From Piromyces finnis finn (lineage: Eukaryota; Fungi; Neocallimastigomycota): 64,000 bases of DNA. Under the pieces are notes generated by a model. The model searched no databases. It was not told where the DNA came from and was given only the letters and a program-made list of their open reading frames with translations. This document shows positions 55,224 through 64,000 of the stretch, piece by piece (positions within the stretch are counted from its first letter, which is position 1; the number at the start of each line of letters is the position of its first letter). Both the position numbers and the translations under genes were made by a program. Where the stretch lies: NCBI GenBank assembly GCA_002104945.1, contig MCFH01000020.1:756575-820574 (forward strand), in the 5' to 3' direction.

Positions 55224-57950
55224 ATGGTAAAATAAAATATTATACATTATGAAATTTAAAAAAATCAATTGTTAAAACAGTTTATCAATATGTTATGTTA
55301 TATACAAATTCGACAAATCCTTTTATTTTATTATTATTTTATCATTTATTTATTTATTTAAAAAAATCGTTTAATAAAGTTTCATTCAAAAATCATAAAA
55401 TTGCATTTTAAATATTAACTCATTTATTTTTATTTTCTACTTAAATATCTTTAATACAATTTTTAAACTGAACTGTCATATAGTCTGTACTCTATATACT
55501 TGGTATATACGTTTTTATAATATGCAGCTTCATATTTATTATGTTATTTGGACCAAATGAAGTAATATTTTATGGCACCTATAATTCAATTCATTATAAT
55601 TTTAAGTCTTAAATTTCTCCATTTTATATTTTTTTCTATATTTCTATACAAATGTTTTTAATTTCATAATGATTAATTAAGGAAATTCCTTTTTTTTTTT
55701 TTTTTTTTTTTTTTAATTAAAATATTAAAATTTAAAATTGTTTATATTCACATACGTATATCATTTACATTTTATTATTAATTTCATTATTGCTAGATGT
55801 TCAAAGGAACAATAATTGAAAAAATACATTGGTTCTTAACTATTGGCGCTCGTCAATATCTCTTGTATATATTTTATTGAAAATTTAAGAAAAATACATA
55901 TTATATATTTTATTTCCAATATTTAAATGAATAGTAACTAATTTCAATAATTTTCTATTTTAAAGACAATTATATAAATATATCTTTGGAAAAGAATTTA
56001 ATACAGAAAACAAAATTTTCAAAGCCATATATGGTTTTAGACATAGATTTATCCAAGTATGAAATTTTATATGCAATTTTAAATATTATTGATAATATTT
56101 AATTAACAAATCTTTTAAATATAATATAAAACATAAAATCATTTATTTATTTATAATTTTTTTTTTTTTTAATTTATAATGTTATCTTTTAAATTAAAAA
56201 CTCATTTTTAAATTTAATCATATATTAAATATATTCATTTAATTCCATTTTAAAATAATAATATTACTAATAATTAATAAAAAAAAATAAAATAATAGTT
56301 GTTTTATTTATCAATTTCCTCAGGAGGTATCGTTCTCTTTTTCTATACAGCTCTTAGTCGTCTTCCAAATAGATATTTAGGCCCAATTCATTTGTAATAT
56401 ATATCTTATTATTAACATTAAATAATATATATTCATATCGAATATCAAAGATAAAATTCAAAAGTATTATTAATTTATATATATTATTCTATCAAATTTT
56501 TTTGGGGAATAGCTTTATTATGCCTGTTGTTATTGGATTTATTTATGTTTCATTCTATATTGCTTGTGTATCGGATCCAGGTTTTATTACAAAAGAAAAT
56601 GTTGACAAAATTTGTAAACATTTCAAATATGACCACATTTTGTATTCTGAAAGAACATGTAAAACGTGCCAATTTAATAAGTAATGAGAAAGAAAATTTT
56701 ATATATAAAATAAAATATTTTTTATCAGTTTAAGTTTAATTATTTATTTTTATAAAAAAAATATTCATATTATTAGACCAGCAAGATCAAAACATTGCAG
56801 TACTTGTGGACATTGTGTAGCTAAATCCGAGTAATTAATATATTTTCTTATGAATTATTTTATAAAAAAAAGTTGAATTAAAAGTAATAAATATTCCATT
56901 TTATTATATAAATATAAAATAAATGAAAATGAAAGTCATCACTGTTCATGGATTAATAATTGTGGTAAATAGACAATATCTTAAACTTCATTATAATAAT
57001 TATTCATTTTTTTATATAATTATTATCACAAATTAACTTAAAATCCCTTTCCATATTTATATTAGTTGGATATTTAAATTTTAGATGGTTCCTTACTTTC
57101 CTTATTTCGAATATTATAATTAGTTTCTATGGTTGTTACCTTTCCTTTTATATTATGAAAGATAAAGCCCACGTTATGGGAATAGATAATGGTTATGCAT
57201 TCAATCGTTATACTCATCAATATGAAGAAATTCATCTTAAGCAATTATTCTTGGTAAATATTTAAATAATAGTACTTTAATATTTTTATTAAATTTATAA
57301 TTAACACTAAGAATAAAAAAATGTTTTTAATAATATAGATTATGATTAATGAAGAGCCAATTCTTTGTGCTTTATTTTTATTTTTAGGCGCTTCTGCCTT
57401 TGTGGTCATTGGTTTTGCTGGCTATCAATCATATCTTTCTATTGTTGCAGGAATGACAAGTAAGATTTTTCATGATTAACTATTAAAGTATAAAATTTAA
57501 TGAATAGAATATATATTATTCTTTCAAACATATTTTCTTTTATTATGTTTACTAATATTATTTCATATTATTGTTATATTAGCTAATGAATTAGCCAAAT
57601 GGGGAAGACTAGAAGGACGTTTAGACAATGGAGAAACCTTTATTACAAAAACATATGTTGGTGATCAAATCACAGAAGAAGGTAAAAAAATACAACAGCA
57701 ACAAGAAGAAAAAAAAGATGGAATAAGAAATAGAAAAGGAAACACATCTAATGAAAAAAGCAATATGAATGAAGAAGAAAAAAAGAATAAATCATCTGCA
57801 TTAGATATGGATGAATACTATGATGGTATGATAAAGAATGGTTATCGTTATACTACAATATCTAGTTTTGAAGATGTTCAAAATCACTATAACTATGGTA
57901 TATTTAAAAATTTCAAAGAAATATTTTTCCCTAATGAAGATATATTTTAA
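55224..57950 (+). CDS. SWF1: DHHC palmitoyltransferase, SWF1/ZDHHC4-like
   Basis: ATG-only first coding exon (55224-55226), then in-frame exons giving [69 protein letters not shown] and GMTTNELAKW. Confidence 0.9.
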
Positions 57951-58374: not shown

Positions 58375-58856
58375 TATTTATTAATAAAAACTTAAATTAT
58401 ATAGTATTTAAGAAATTATTAATAAAGTATCAAGAAGGTTTATTAGATTTCTAATATAGATGAGTAGTAACGATGATTAAGGATGTAGGTAGCATTAGAT
58501 TAGTGTATCCTTATGTATTTTCATACATTTGGTAGGCACTAATCACCCAAGGTGATGTATAATACTATCCTTAATATCGAAGATAGAAGTATTATTTTGA
58601 AGGATTGGTAGTTATAGTGTATTATAGCTTCTTTTAGCGTATCCTTGAGCAGTCTTTACATTTGGATTTTTTTCCATGTTTAGACCGTTCGGAGAAACTG
58701 AAAGGTTCCAGGTTATTTTATGCTTATCGATTTTTCAAAGTAATTGTTACCATATATTCTATATCTTTTCGGAAAAGTACAAGGTAACGCAGTTATCAGT
58801 ACTGACTCGTCACTATGTGGCGTTGATCGTTGAGGTAAACCATATGGAAAACATCT
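58375..58856 (+). ncRNA. snR30: snR30/U17-like box H/ACA snoRNA, copy 1 (5' end uncertain, 58375 to about 58460)
   Basis: Candidate H box AAAGTA (58737-58742); basal stem CCATAT/ATATGG; m1-like ATATTCTA (58754-58761); exact m2 AAACCAT (58837-58843); ACA at 58851-58853 plus 3 nt. The layout parallels the U17 3' hairpin (..CATATTCCTA...AAACCATGCAGGAAACATAT). GC-enriched body with several helices. Confidence 0.8.
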
Positions 58857-58925
58857 CATTATTAAAACAACAAATTATAAAATTAATTAATTTAAAAATT
58901 TTATATGAAAAATATTTGTTTTTTT
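58375..58925 (+). repeat. Left arm of a ~550-bp inverted repeat
   Basis: Reverse complement of 60509-61058, compared base by base. Only three differing sites (about 58389, 58438, 58918); 58439-58917 is identical. Confidence 0.97.
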
Positions 58926-59461
58926 ATTAATTTTTCTGATTAAAAAATATATATATATGGAAAGAGTTTCAAATTTAATCAAGGAAATTCCGAAAGATAC
59001 ATATTATAACAATCAACGGGAACTTTTGACCATTAGGATTAGTGCAATCAATAGATAGAGTTATAATTCTGTCCTGGAAAAGTTTGGTATATGTTTATTT
59101 GCTCCATTAAAGAACAATTATTATATTATAATAGTGCCTTATTTTAATTATAATTACAATATATCCATTTTTATTCTTTTATATTTATTTAAACCTATTT
59201 TAATTAATTATTTTTATTTATAAATACATGTATCATACATAATTAATAGATAAAAGATTATAATATATATAAAAATTAAATAATAATAAAAGAAAATTTT
59301 TAATATATAATTTTTATTTTATTTTTTTTTAAAATTTCTAATTTATTGATTTTAAATTTGAATTTTAAAATTTTTCATACTATCCATTTATTTATGTTGC
59401 TTGTATAAAATAACTTTGTATATATAATATATTTTAATAAAAATAAAAATTAAAAAAAAAA

Positions 59462-60433
59462 ATGATTAAAAGTTGTCTATATAAAATAATATTATTATTT
59501 TATATATTTTATATAAATAATGGTCAATGTCATTCATACGAATCACCTTATTGCTCAGCTGAGCTTGATAGCATAAATACCAGAAATCATTTTGTTTCTG
59601 AAAATATTGATGATCCAACTGGTGGATTTATGCTCACCATTCAACCAAAATTAAAAAATAATATAAAGTTTTCACCCGATTTTACCATTACACTTTTTGG
59701 TTCAAAATATAAAAGTATCAAAGGTCTTATCCTTTATGTTGAACATGAAAATCAAACCCATTTTACGGAAGAGGAGGATCTTAATTTAAGAATTGGTCAG
59801 TTTATAAATATTAACGATCAATATTTTAGACCAAAAAAATGTGGTGTAAAGTCGCCTATTAATAGTACTTTGGAACATTTTAATGGAAAAGATAAACCTC
59901 TTCCACAAACTTTTACCTGGACTCTAAGCAATGTTTTTGATTTTGAAAATGATTTTAATGGTGTAGTAAGAGGTTTAGGTAATTATTTTTTTTTTTTTTT
60001 TTTCCTCATAAAATAAAAATAAATAAATATAATAAAATTTAAATTTCCTATTTTTTAATTAAAAATATAACATGAATACTATGATTTATAAATTATTTTT
60101 ATATTCCTTGTTAAAATAAATATATATAAAAGTGGTTGTTTCAATGCACGAATGGGGTGTGCCAGAACCTGTAAAATTTAACCAAAAAATATAATGATGA
60201 ATATTTATCAAGAAGAATATCAGAAATATATATTAATTCATACTCCATTTATGAAAAGAATGGTACAGAATTTATTTTCATTATTTGCTTTAAGCATTGC
60301 CTCAGCACTAGTTTTCTATTTCATTTCTCGATACATTGTTAGAAAAGTAAAATTATATATAAAGGATAGAGAATATGGAGAATATCATAAACTTGAAAAT
60401 ACTAAAACTCAAAATTTAACTAAAGTAGTATAA
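59462..60433 (+). CDS. Signal peptide + Reeler-like domain + C-terminal transmembrane helix (type I membrane protein)
   Basis: Hydrophobic N-terminus; Reeler-like pattern IKGLILYVE..RIGQF..C..TLEHFNGKDKPLPQTFTWT..VVRGL|VVVSMHEW across an intron at about 59979-60132; TM segment LFSLFALSIASALVFYFI with a basic tail. The junction near 60171-60223 needs either a 53-nt intron or one extra A. Confidence 0.65.
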
Positions 60434-60508
60434 AACTAAATTGCTTTTACAAATTTATATTTAAATTAATCAAAATTTTAATAAAATTAACAAATAATAA
60501 CATATATC

Positions 60509-61058
60509 AAAAAAATAAATATTTTTCATATAAAATTTTTAAATTAATTAATTTTATAATTTGTTGTTTTAATAATGAGATGTTTTCCATATGGTTTACC
60601 TCAACGATCAACGCCACATAGTGACGAGTCAGTACTGATAACTGCGTTACCTTGTACTTTTCCGAAAAGATATAGAATATATGGTAACAATTACTTTGAA
60701 AAATCGATAAGCATAAAATAACCTGGAACCTTTCAGTTTCTCCGAACGGTCTAAACATGGAAAAAAATCCAAATGTAAAGACTGCTCAAGGATACGCTAA
60801 AAGAAGCTATAATACACTATAACTACCAATCCTTCAAAATAATACTTCTATCTTCGATATTAAGGATAGTATTATACATCACCTTGGGTGATTAGTGCCT
60901 ACCAAATGTATGAAAATACATAAGGATACACTAATCTAATGCTACCTACATCCTTAATCATCGTTACTACTCATCTATATTAGAAATCTAATAAAACTTC
61001 TTGATACTTTATTAATAATTTCTTAAATACTATATAATTTAAGCTTTATTAATAAATA
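60509..61058 (-). repeat. Right arm of the ~550-bp inverted repeat
   Basis: See left arm. Over the identical core, paired coordinates sum to 119434. Confidence 0.97.
60578..61058 (-). ncRNA. snR30: snR30/U17-like box H/ACA snoRNA, copy 2
   Basis: Identical RNA body on the minus strand: m1-like at 60673-60680, m2 at 60591-60597, ACA at 60581-60583. Confidence 0.8.
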
Positions 61059-61165: not shown

Positions 61166-61378
61166 TATCTTTAAATGAATGATATTCATAAGATTTTATT
61201 GGTAATAAAAAGCCACTAATTTTTTTAATGATATATAATAATAGTTTTTTTCCAAGTTTTTTTTAATTAATCATTAAGCAAAAAGTTGTTAAAAAAGAAA
61301 ATAATTATTAATACTAGTTGTATTAATGGTAAATTTCTTTTTTAAATAAGATTTAAAAAAAATATTATTTATTGTTAA

Positions 61379-61487
61379 CATATGGTGATGATAACTTTTA
61401 TTTTTTTTGAGTGGAATAGAAACGCTGTGTTAGTTGTTTCACTGCAATGAATCAGAAAAATTTATAGTCATAGTTACACTGAATATG
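61379..61487 (+). ncRNA. snR63: Box C/D snoRNA, snR63/U46 (SNORD46)-like guide for LSU rRNA 2'-O-methylation
   Basis: Box C GTGATGA (61385-61391), box D CTGA (61479-61482), 5-bp terminal stem CATAT/ATATG in correct kink-turn register. The guide AGTCATAGTTAC (61466-61477) is complementary to the conserved LSU GUAACUAUGACU. The D+5 rule picks the second A of GUAAC, which is yeast Am2256. Confidence 0.85.
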
Positions 61488-62073
61488 ATAACATAAGTAT
61501 GAAAATAAATATTTAATTTAAAAATTAAAGTTGGAAATGGTTGTATAAAATTTTTTATTTTATTTTATTAGAAAATATAATTTTGGTTATTGATTTTTTA
61601 GTGATTTTATTATTAATTTCTTTTTATTTAGAAAAAGAAAAGGAACTTTGTGTATTTTATATTAAATTAAATATATTATCAAGTATCCTATTTTTATTAC
61701 ATATATTTAATTACTTTCATCAAAATTAACAAAACCAAAAGATTTAATATCATTTTTACTAATTTTTGTTTTTATTTTTTATTTTATTATTCAAAAAAAA
61801 AAATAAATTATATAAATGATTAAATATATAACTTTTTTATATATGATTATATGTAATTTTTAACTGATAGAAAAATTAATAATTATAATTTTTTTTCTTT
61901 TAAAAAATACAAATATAAAATTCATTGTTTTTATAAATTTACTTTTGTCAATAAATCATTTTTAAAGTATATATGGCTATGTAATGATTTTAAAATAATT
62001 TATTGAATTTATTAAAAAAAAAAAAAAAAACATTATTTATGAAGAGTTAAATTATGATAATATCTTATTTTGA

Positions 62074-64000
62074 TTAAATAAAACCAGATTCAATTAACAA
62101 TCTAGCAAGCTTTTCATCTTCACGTTCTATTGGTTCTAAACTTAAAGACATATTATACATATCAGATTCATCCTCCAATTCTTACTAAAGATTCCTTTAA
62201 CCAATTTTGTAATTCTGGAACATCCTGTAAACAGTAAACTTGATTTTGATATTGTTGAATTTCACGAATTACATCGGCAGTTTTACTTCTCTTACTAAAG
62301 TTAATTAACTTTTCATTAACCTCACCATCAGCATTCTTAAGATTATTTGAGTTACCATCATCAATGAAAGTTAAATCAGTAAGATAAACACCTAAAAATG
62401 GAACACATGGTGGGTTTACTGAGTGAAGTTGTTCACGATAAGTAGAAAAGTTTTTGTTCTATCCATAGTCTTATTTAATGAGTCCAAAGTAGCTATATTT
62501 TTATTACTTAAAAAGTCCCAGGTCTTCTTAACGATGAATTGGAGCTGAACTAAAACCAGCTAAAATAGACATTAAAGTATTAAAGTTATTTAATGCATAA
62601 CATTTTCAGCATATATATAAAATGCTTCATTATAGATGCACGCTTCTTTAAATCAGTTTCTTTCAAAATTGTAATTGCAACCCATCCAGTAACTTGGTTT
62701 GACATTTCAATCATCATCTTATATTTACGGCTGGTGAATTTAATTTTTTGTGACCATGCTTTATTAGACATTCTACTGGTTGAATTTGGTTATACAATTT
62801 AGAGCACATTAATGTTAATTGTCTAGCTATTTCTGTTGGATCAAGTTCATTGAACGTATATGACGAAAAGATTTCGGTATGATTGGAACTGGAGCTTCAC
62901 GACCAGGAGATGGAGCAATTCCCTTAGTAAAAACCTTTATCAAATCTATCAAGAAGTTTTGATACAGTAAGGAAGGTTGGATCACTTTGAATTTGTCTAT
63001 CAAAGAATTCCTTTGCCATATTGAAAGCTTTTTGATCTTCTTCATCAGTTTCAATAGCATATTCTAACCAACTTTTACAACATTACATACACGAAGACGA
63101 ATTGGTTTTAATTTCTTTTCATGCCATTCATTAACTTCATTAATATCTGTAAGACCTGCTGGTTGTGGAAGTAAATATCTCTTTAATAACTCAGACATGA
63201 ATTGTATAGTAGTACAAAAAGAACGGTAAGTTAAAAGGAAAGTATTTGTAAAATTAGCATCAAAGGAATCATGACAAGTTAATCGTTCAACAAGAGCTTC
63301 AAATGTTCCACCTTTAACCTTCCATCCATATTAAATAAAAGATCTTTTACATCATAATCATATTCTAAATACCACTTCTTCTTAGGAGGAGCATTTGTTA
63401 CCTCTGAACCTAAAAGTTGCATTAATTTAGCTGAAGTCTTACGTTCACTAAACTGATCAATTTCAACTTGAACACCATTTTGATCATAATATAATGGTGG
63501 TGGTTGTATTGGTGAACAGAATGAGAAGAACTCTTACGTGGATGTGGATTAGTAATGTACTATTGTTAAAATTCTCGGTAAGTTTACTTGGTAATGATCG
63601 TTGAGAAAAGGTTCTATTTCTAGCTTGACCATTTTCTTCAAAATCTGGGTATTCAGTATCTGGAACGTCCATTGACATAGCTCTACGATTACGTGTTAAC
63701 GAAGCAGTATTATTTATTGATGTATTATTATTTATTGAAGCAACATTAACACTGGCAGAGAGAAGAAAGTTATTTGTATCGTTTGAAGAAGCAGAAGAAT
63801 TTACAAGAGATGCTTCAGATGAAGCAGACGCCCTACGGTTATAGTCATAATATATTTTTTGATATTGATCAACATTTTCTTTTTCTTGAAGTAGACATTT
63901 TGTGGAAATTACAAGTTCTTTAATAGCCTTTTCAATTAATTCAGTACTTAAAAGAATCTGTTCCTCAAAATTACTTGGTCTTAAAGTATTAACAATATTT
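62074..64000 (-). CDS. Ras guanine-nucleotide exchange factor (Cdc25/Sos-like REM + CDC25 domains), 3' part, broken by at least 12 single-base frameshifts in this sequence
   Basis: Motifs across shifting frames: WYLEYDY, KGGTFEALVERLT, FTNTFLLTYRSF, PIRLRVCNVV, ELDPTEIARQLTL, MSNQVTGWVA, LNNFNTLMSILAG, NPPCVPFLGVYLTDLTFIDDGN, LINFSKR, EREDEKLARLLIESGFI*. Start lies beyond the window. Confidence 0.9.

Follow-up and report, generated by a model that had tools for sequence, protein, structure and literature searches.

A palindromic pair of probable snR30/U17 small nucleolar RNA genes enclosing a Reelin-domain gene in the anaerobic gut fungus Piromyces finnis

The stretch of Piromyces finnis DNA analysed here, referred to as the window, is 64,000 nucleotides (nt) in length and supplies the numbering for all RNA coordinates below. 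A repeat search identified one long inverted repeat in it, with arms of 555 nt that are 98% complementary and separated by a spacer of 1551 nt (Table 1). Each arm carries a candidate gene for snR30/U17, a small nucleolar RNA (snoRNA) needed by all eukaryotes for 18S ribosomal RNA (rRNA), and the spacer contains a gene for a Reelin-domain protein. Pairwise alignment places the ten mismatches between the arms at 58390, 58438 and 58918-58938, and the RNA body of the left arm (plus strand) is a 100% match to its mirror image in the right arm (minus strand). The GC content of the RNA body is 33.8%, compared to 20.4% for the window. A preliminary description of this locus, made from the sequence alone, had reported two convergent, identical and GC-enriched copies within an inverted repeat, and this is what is present. 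It had also raised the alternative of a dispersed mobile repeat, and on this point no further copy was found in the 64-kb window.

Orthologous loci were found by means of homologues of the enclosed Reelin-domain gene. These come from Piromyces sp. E2 (L121), Anaeromyces robustus (L122), a relative represented by a Logan contig (L129) and another relative represented by a set of JGI metagenome contigs (L131-L138). The Reelin-domain gene is syntenic at L121, L122, L129 and L131, and the RNA adjoins it at every orthologous locus, with identities to the P. finnis RNA of 86% in Piromyces sp. E2, 81-83% in A. robustus, 82% in the L129 species and 87% in the L131 species. A profile of the Reelin-domain protein together with exhaustive searches gave no further genome-scale contigs and only one transcript of 1075 nt (41% identity), with Neocallimastix, Caecomyces and Pecoramyces remaining unsampled.

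Conservation between the species sets in at approximately 58465-58470 and ends 3-4 nt past a terminal ACA box, and beyond these points the AT-rich flanks are unalignable. Because conservation is confined to this interval, the RNA is delimited to about 390 nt, shorter than the 400-480 nt originally suggested. An AT-rich hairpin at 58377-58426, formerly counted among the helices of the RNA, is situated upstream of the onset of conservation (~58465); it is more likely to be promoter than RNA. Found here, inside the arm and some 55 nt upstream of the conserved part of the RNA, is a TATA-like element that may act as the promoter; in alignment A2 it is partly retained by Piromyces sp. E2 and A. robustus.

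Domain-wise consensus folding divides the RNA into a 5′ hairpin, an 11-nt hinge, a long internal hairpin, a 5-nt linker and a 3′ hairpin. Folding differs by strand, the plus strand giving -122.7 kcal/mol (z -6.0) and the minus strand -81.3 kcal/mol (z -2.7). In the four- and five-species alignments, 97% of the cells of the 119 proposed pairs are standard pairs. Thirteen pairs have changed on both sides, compared to 5.4-6.8 in shuffled alignments (0 of 500 reaching 13) and 0-4 in slid controls, and so the test by covariation across orthologues that had been called for gave a clear signal in the 5′ and internal hairpins. Five of these compensatory pairs belong to helices 1-4 of the 5′ hairpin, where 95-100% of cells are paired, and eight to helices 5-9 of the internal hairpin, six of them in its basal helix. 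The hairpin-hinge-hairpin-tail fold is comparatively supported in these two domains, which hold all of the compensatory pairs, and the invariant 3′ core is without covariation signal. This fold also corrects a helix initially drawn as TAAGGAT/ATCCTTA, as TTAAGGAT pairs with ATCCTTAA at 58567-58574 and not with 58508-58514.

The 3′ hairpin was folded as an isolated segment and forms exactly the structure that had first been described for it. A basal stem CCAUAU/AUAUGG (58750-58755/58842-58847) is followed by an internal loop and an upper stem UAUCUU/GAGGUA (58762-58767/58832-58837); AUAUUCUA and AAACCAU face each other across the loop, and the ACA box lies 3 nt before position 58856. In all four of the species folded, the isolated hairpin has this one H/ACA-like minimum-energy fold, the stem of the L131 species having been read off the alignment. 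Across the five species, which represent at least two genera, the hairpin is invariant except for its apical arm. The stem of this arm covaries and differs by species: that of P. finnis is GGUAAC/GUUAUC, that of Piromyces sp. E2 is UAAUAGC/GCUAUUA and that of the L131 species is GUUAGC/GUUAAC, while those of A. robustus and the L129 species are shorter. The fold of the 3′ hairpin core is a model derived from thermodynamics only.

Members of the snR30/U17 family are marked by two short motifs, m1 and m2, given as AUAUUCC(UA) and AAACCAU for 14 species (PMC7601244). The m1/m2 element is invariantly located 7 nt upstream of the ACA box in all known members, with the motifs occupying the proximal part of the loop, and the 3′ hairpin's distal portion is also essential (PMC2664660). 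In P. finnis, the m2 motif AAACCAU is exact in both copies and invariant in the five species. It ends at 58843 and the ACA box starts at 58851, giving the family spacing of 7 nt. Both motifs sit proximally in the loop, with 13 nt from the upper stem to the ACA box. The m1 region AUAUUCUAU (58754-58762) matches six of the seven invariant letters of AUAUUCC(UA), the seventh being changed from C to U in all five species. AUUCU from this motif can be paired with the core GGAAU of yeast rm1 through one G-U pair, and by analogy such pairing between m1 and 18S rRNA may also take place in P. finnis. Neither the window nor the orthologous loci retrieved contain rDNA of this lineage.

Comparison with snR30 of Saccharomyces cerevisiae was made by layout, and such similarity to known family members as was found (SNORA73 model) is confined to the 3′-hairpin core. 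Both RNAs have the order 5′ hairpin, hinge, internal hairpin, 3′ hairpin and ACA box; in both, m1 and m2 lie on opposite strands of the proximal 3′-hairpin loop, m2 is located 7 nt before the ACA box and the upper hairpin is strongly constrained. The yeast RNA, which is essential for 18S processing, is 606 nt in length, whereas that of P. finnis is about 390 nt and has no conserved long leader. The two also differ in m1 (AUAUUCC in yeast, AUAUUCU in P. finnis) and in the non-canonical H box of the latter. With vertebrate U17/SNORA73 (RF00045, ~207 nt) and the U17 RNA of Schizosaccharomyces pombe (325 nt), the Rfam model can be aligned end to end with the basal stem, m1, m2 and the ACA box in register. 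However, the 5′ domain of P. finnis is unrelated to that of U17/SNORA73 and the apical part of its 3′ hairpin is branched and some 40-50 nt longer. In snR30 of Trypanosoma brucei, an altered m1 is accompanied by a compensatory rm1 in 18S rRNA, with m2 unchanged (PMC2664660). This provides a precedent for a lineage-wide change of m1 with m2 retained; unlike the trypanosome case, the change in P. finnis is a single C to U, which could pair with an unchanged rm1 by a G-U pair.

Each arm is very probably the gene for the Neocallimastigomycota orthologue of snR30/U17, so that the locus would hold two identical and unannotated genes for this RNA; the probability of this is put at roughly 0.85. The identity proposed in the preliminary description is supported by the m2 motif, the near-canonical m1, their position in the proximal loop, the 7-nt spacing, the ACA box, invariance in five species and covariation. 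The RNA departs from the family in the C to U change at m1 position 7, in a degenerate H box and in the arrangement of its genes as palindromic twins.

A number of observations weigh against this identification. The changed m1 position is invariant among the 14 species of Table 1 in PMC7601244. No Rfam match was obtained at gathering thresholds in the window or in the orthologous loci. The alignment of the five species reveals no conserved ANANNA H box. In addition, RNAalifold, when applied to the whole alignment, prefers a structure in which the m1 region is paired with AUAUGGAA, together with a long-range helix GGUAGC/GUUACC; covariation offers no means of deciding between this and the H/ACA-like fold, since the core of the 3′ hairpin does not vary. 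With regard to the H box, the hinge retains AGA-N-N-G-A-A in all species, 2 nt past the 5′ hairpin, with a strict ANANNA only in P. finnis (AUAGAA, 58583-58588) and the L131 species (AAAGAA). Two other candidates for this box were rejected on account of their location, namely AAAGUA (58737-58742), which lies in the basal stem of the internal hairpin where compensatory changes occur, and the model-aligned AGGUUA (58710-58715), which also lies in a stem of that hairpin, though one that lacks such changes.

The covariance-model check with SNORA73 suggested at the outset stayed below the gathering threshold. At permissive thresholds, positions 1-219 of the model, its full length, aligned to 58694-58856 in P. 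finnis (14.1 bits, E-value 0.43), placing the basal stem, m1, m2 and the ACA box in register, and among the H/ACA families SNORA73 alone aligns end to end. The A. robustus orthologue scored 17.2 bits (E-value 0.042), the lowest E-value among 4227 families. However, these scores of 14-17 bits are far below the gathering score of 74 for RF00045 and would not be significant genome-wide, which counts as a further point against the identification. Fungi_U3 (14.7 bits) and ToxI (17.8 bits) were dismissed as Rfam identities, being partial or short matches.

A regular-expression scan of the window for m2 followed after 7 nt by ACA, with ATATTC up to 140 nt upstream, detected only the two copies, and 0.033 such combinations are expected per 64 kb of composition-matched random sequence. 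This corresponds to about 30 sites in a genome of 56 Mb, and for this reason the motif by itself is insufficient for a claim of snR30, which is carried instead by the evidence of conservation. A metagenome scan with the m1...m2 pattern was swamped by chance matches, and no orthologue was found among the matches listed (at least 120 stretches).

The sequence of the RNA is also found in RNA and metatranscriptome runs from several organisms. In a run index, three probable RNA assemblies from the same organism (29-45 million letters) contain 75-90% of the words sampled, and a random-primed metatranscriptome contains 65% of the words of the whole RNA and 89% of those of the 3′ hairpin. Runs from no fewer than five other coded organisms, as well as gut and digester metatranscriptomes, contain three of the nine 3′-hairpin words compared to about five of the 40 from the whole RNA, and on these figures the 3′ hairpin is the part exactly shared among relatives. 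The RNA is missing from the transcript contigs of the Reelin-domain gene in A. robustus, which suggests that it is transcribed separately from that gene.

The most credible of the alternatives, though itself improbable, is a lineage-specific structured noncoding RNA that merely resembles snR30, such as an H/ACA pseudouridylation guide or another H/ACA-tailed RNA, with the true snR30 encoded elsewhere. The sub-threshold covariance-model score, the deviating m1 and the lack of a conserved canonical H box would all be in keeping with such an RNA. Nevertheless, what is seen here is the signature of the snR30/U17 family: an exact m2 at the invariant distance of 7 nt from the ACA box and, facing it in the loop's proximal half, AUAUUC. 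Guide RNAs of the H/ACA type make use of the loop's distal half, whereas m1 and m2 are here placed proximally. Furthermore, the whole 3′ hairpin is frozen across genera, whereas the remainder of the RNA diverges by 13-18%. A telomere-template-like CCCUAA was not seen on reading the sequence.

It is highly unlikely that the repeat is a feature of the DNA only, either a segmental duplication of recent origin in inverted form or a palindromic element, mobile or recombinational, in spite of the 98% identity of arms arranged around a 1.55-kb spacer and the inversion of the enclosed gene relative to the RNA block between genera. Other species carry single copies at syntenic sites, the compensatory pairs and the strand-asymmetric folding indicate selection on an RNA, the sequence occurs in RNA runs, and the window has only these two copies. 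Still less probable, to the point of being negligible, is a small protein encoded by the open reading frames (ORFs) within the repeat. An ATG-initiated ORF is indeed present in both arms (58676-58930 and 60507-60758; 84 and 83 amino acids), but neither has a gene on record or a homologue among 5.8 billion proteins. Both are broken in every orthologue, where indels of the apical arm shift their frame and the longest ATG ORFs are of 28-43 amino acids and on the other strand; the earlier view that the ORF prediction misreads the RNA as small proteins is borne out. Readings of the locus as protein-coding, as a mobile repeat or as an assembly artefact were accordingly rejected on the basis of synteny, covariation and unique flanks, and an snR30/U17 gene in each arm is retained as the preferred interpretation.

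Table 1. Features of the palindromic locus in the window of Piromyces finnis
Feature	Position	Strand	Right copy	Remarks
Left inverted-repeat arm	58387-58941	+		RNA gene with its promoter region and ~85 nt of 3′ flanking sequence
Right inverted-repeat arm	60493-61047	-		In Piromyces sp. E2 and Anaeromyces robustus, the single copy is orthologous to the outer flank of this arm
TATA-like element, putative promoter	58398-58412	+	61022-61036	
snR30/U17-like RNA, left copy	58465-58856	+		5′ end approximate (58460-58470); 3′ end predicted, 3 nt past ACA
snR30/U17-like RNA, right copy	60578-60969	-		Identical to left copy; mirrored coordinates
5′ hairpin domain	58471-58579	+	60855-60963	Consensus fold
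H-box-like hinge, AGAUAGAA	58581-58588	+		Alignments A4/A5, columns 156-166
Long internal hairpin	58591-58744	+	60690-60843	Consensus fold
3′ hairpin	58750-58847	+	60587-60684	Basal stem, internal loop, upper stem and branched top
m1-like motif, AUAUUCUA	58754-58761	+	60673-60680	SNORA73 alignment; canonical AUAUUCCUA, C to U at position 7
m2 motif, AAACCAU	58837-58843	+	60591-60597	Exact; invariant in five species
ACA box	58851-58853	+	60581-60583	7 nt past m2, 3 nt before predicted end
Palindrome-enclosed gene, Reelin-domain protein BCR36DRAFT_448704	59462-60433	+		Predicted protein 100% identical

Flank homology matches the right arm of P. finnis to the single copy found in Piromyces sp. 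E2 and to that in the L129 species, and BLAST homology of the outer flank of this arm extends to 61328 with Piromyces sp. E2 and to 61266 with A. robustus. The latter species keeps the block consisting of the RNA, its outer flank and a candidate box C/D snoRNA, but has it upstream of and co-directional with the Reelin-domain gene. The orientation of this gene relative to the block in A. robustus (L122 8001-9222) is opposite to that in Piromyces sp. E2 (L121 8001-9062) and at the right arm of P. finnis. Such an arrangement is as expected from inversion of the enclosed segment by recombination between the arms.

In the L131 species, both ends of the gene are accompanied by a copy of the RNA. Contig L136 (Ga0187902_10349061) connects the gene with the 3′ end of a copy upstream of it, and L131 (Ga0187900_1004786) connects it with a convergent copy downstream; both are JGI metagenome contigs. 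Positions 1-161 of L136 and 1804-1966 of L131 are mutually inverted repeats, with 95.7% identity over 163 nt and complete identity over the 57 nt of RNA seen. A twin-copy palindrome around the same gene is present in at least two species. It was also observed that contigs L131 and L132 start near the end of the repeat, which resembles an assembly break at a repeat. As the L131 species has the palindrome too, the palindrome is probably older than these species. Within a species the arms resemble each other, whereas between species they differ by 13-14%, a pattern which suggests that an old palindrome has evolved in concert, with one copy probably lost in some lineages.

The locus is flanked upstream by a gene for a DHHC palmitoyltransferase (56400-57950, plus strand) and downstream by one for a RasGEF (62016-64000, minus strand). 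The synteny of these two genes in Piromyces sp. E2 shows that the locus is no chimera of the assembly. The segment that separates the left arm from the Reelin-domain gene (58958-59135) has a slightly raised GC content of about 23% and contains a 33-codon ATG ORF. It gave no BLAST match in any orthologous locus and Rfam matches only at chance level, and it appears to be specific to P. finnis. The box C/D snoRNA candidate (61378-61529) adjoins the snR30-like gene. It has 81% identity over 153 nt to a sequence in A. robustus (L122 5726-5878), with weak Rfam matches to SNORD46 (21 bits, E-value 0.055) and DdR4 (22.8 bits), and no BLAST match in Piromyces sp. E2 at E<1e-4.

If the identification is correct, each arm of the palindrome would be an independent snR30/U17 gene, producing an RNA for the early cleavages that release 18S rRNA. 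This RNA of about 390 nt would consist of the 5′ hairpin, a hinge whose H box is degenerate, the long internal hairpin, the 3′ hairpin and the ACA box. By analogy with yeast and human, its 3′ hairpin would be bound by Cbf5, Nop10, Nhp2 and Gar1, and its m1 (AUAUUCU) and m2 (AAACCAU) would pair with rm1 (GGAAUA) and rm2 (UGGUUU) in expansion segment 6 (ES6) of the pre-18S rRNA. The 3′ hairpin's invariant upper portion may serve as a docking site for snR30-specific factors such as Utp23. Gene conversion from one arm to the other would keep the two copies identical. A further suggestion goes beyond this and is doubtful, namely that the C to U change in m1 is matched by a G to A change in rm1 of Neocallimastigomycota 18S rRNA, and that the palindrome is a recombination-active flip-flop which keeps the twins identical and has inverted the Reelin-domain gene between Piromyces and Anaeromyces. 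If true, the m1 and rm1 changes would constitute the second natural compensatory pair between snR30 and 18S rRNA, after that of the trypanosomes.

No paper joining snR30 with Piromyces was found in the literature, and a survey of fungal snoRNAs makes no mention of the Neocallimastigomycota (PMC5824354). Anaerobic gut fungi are without snoRNA annotation, and no earlier description of an snR30-like RNA from P. finnis was found. The Rfam model misses this RNA, and the alignment of five species can provide a seed with which to find snR30 in very AT-rich, early-diverging fungi. The analysis also removes two spurious ORFs from consideration and documents a conserved twin-gene palindrome with probable concerted evolution. 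For the snR30/U17 family, the alignment indicates which parts may tolerate change, these being position 7 of m1 and the H box.

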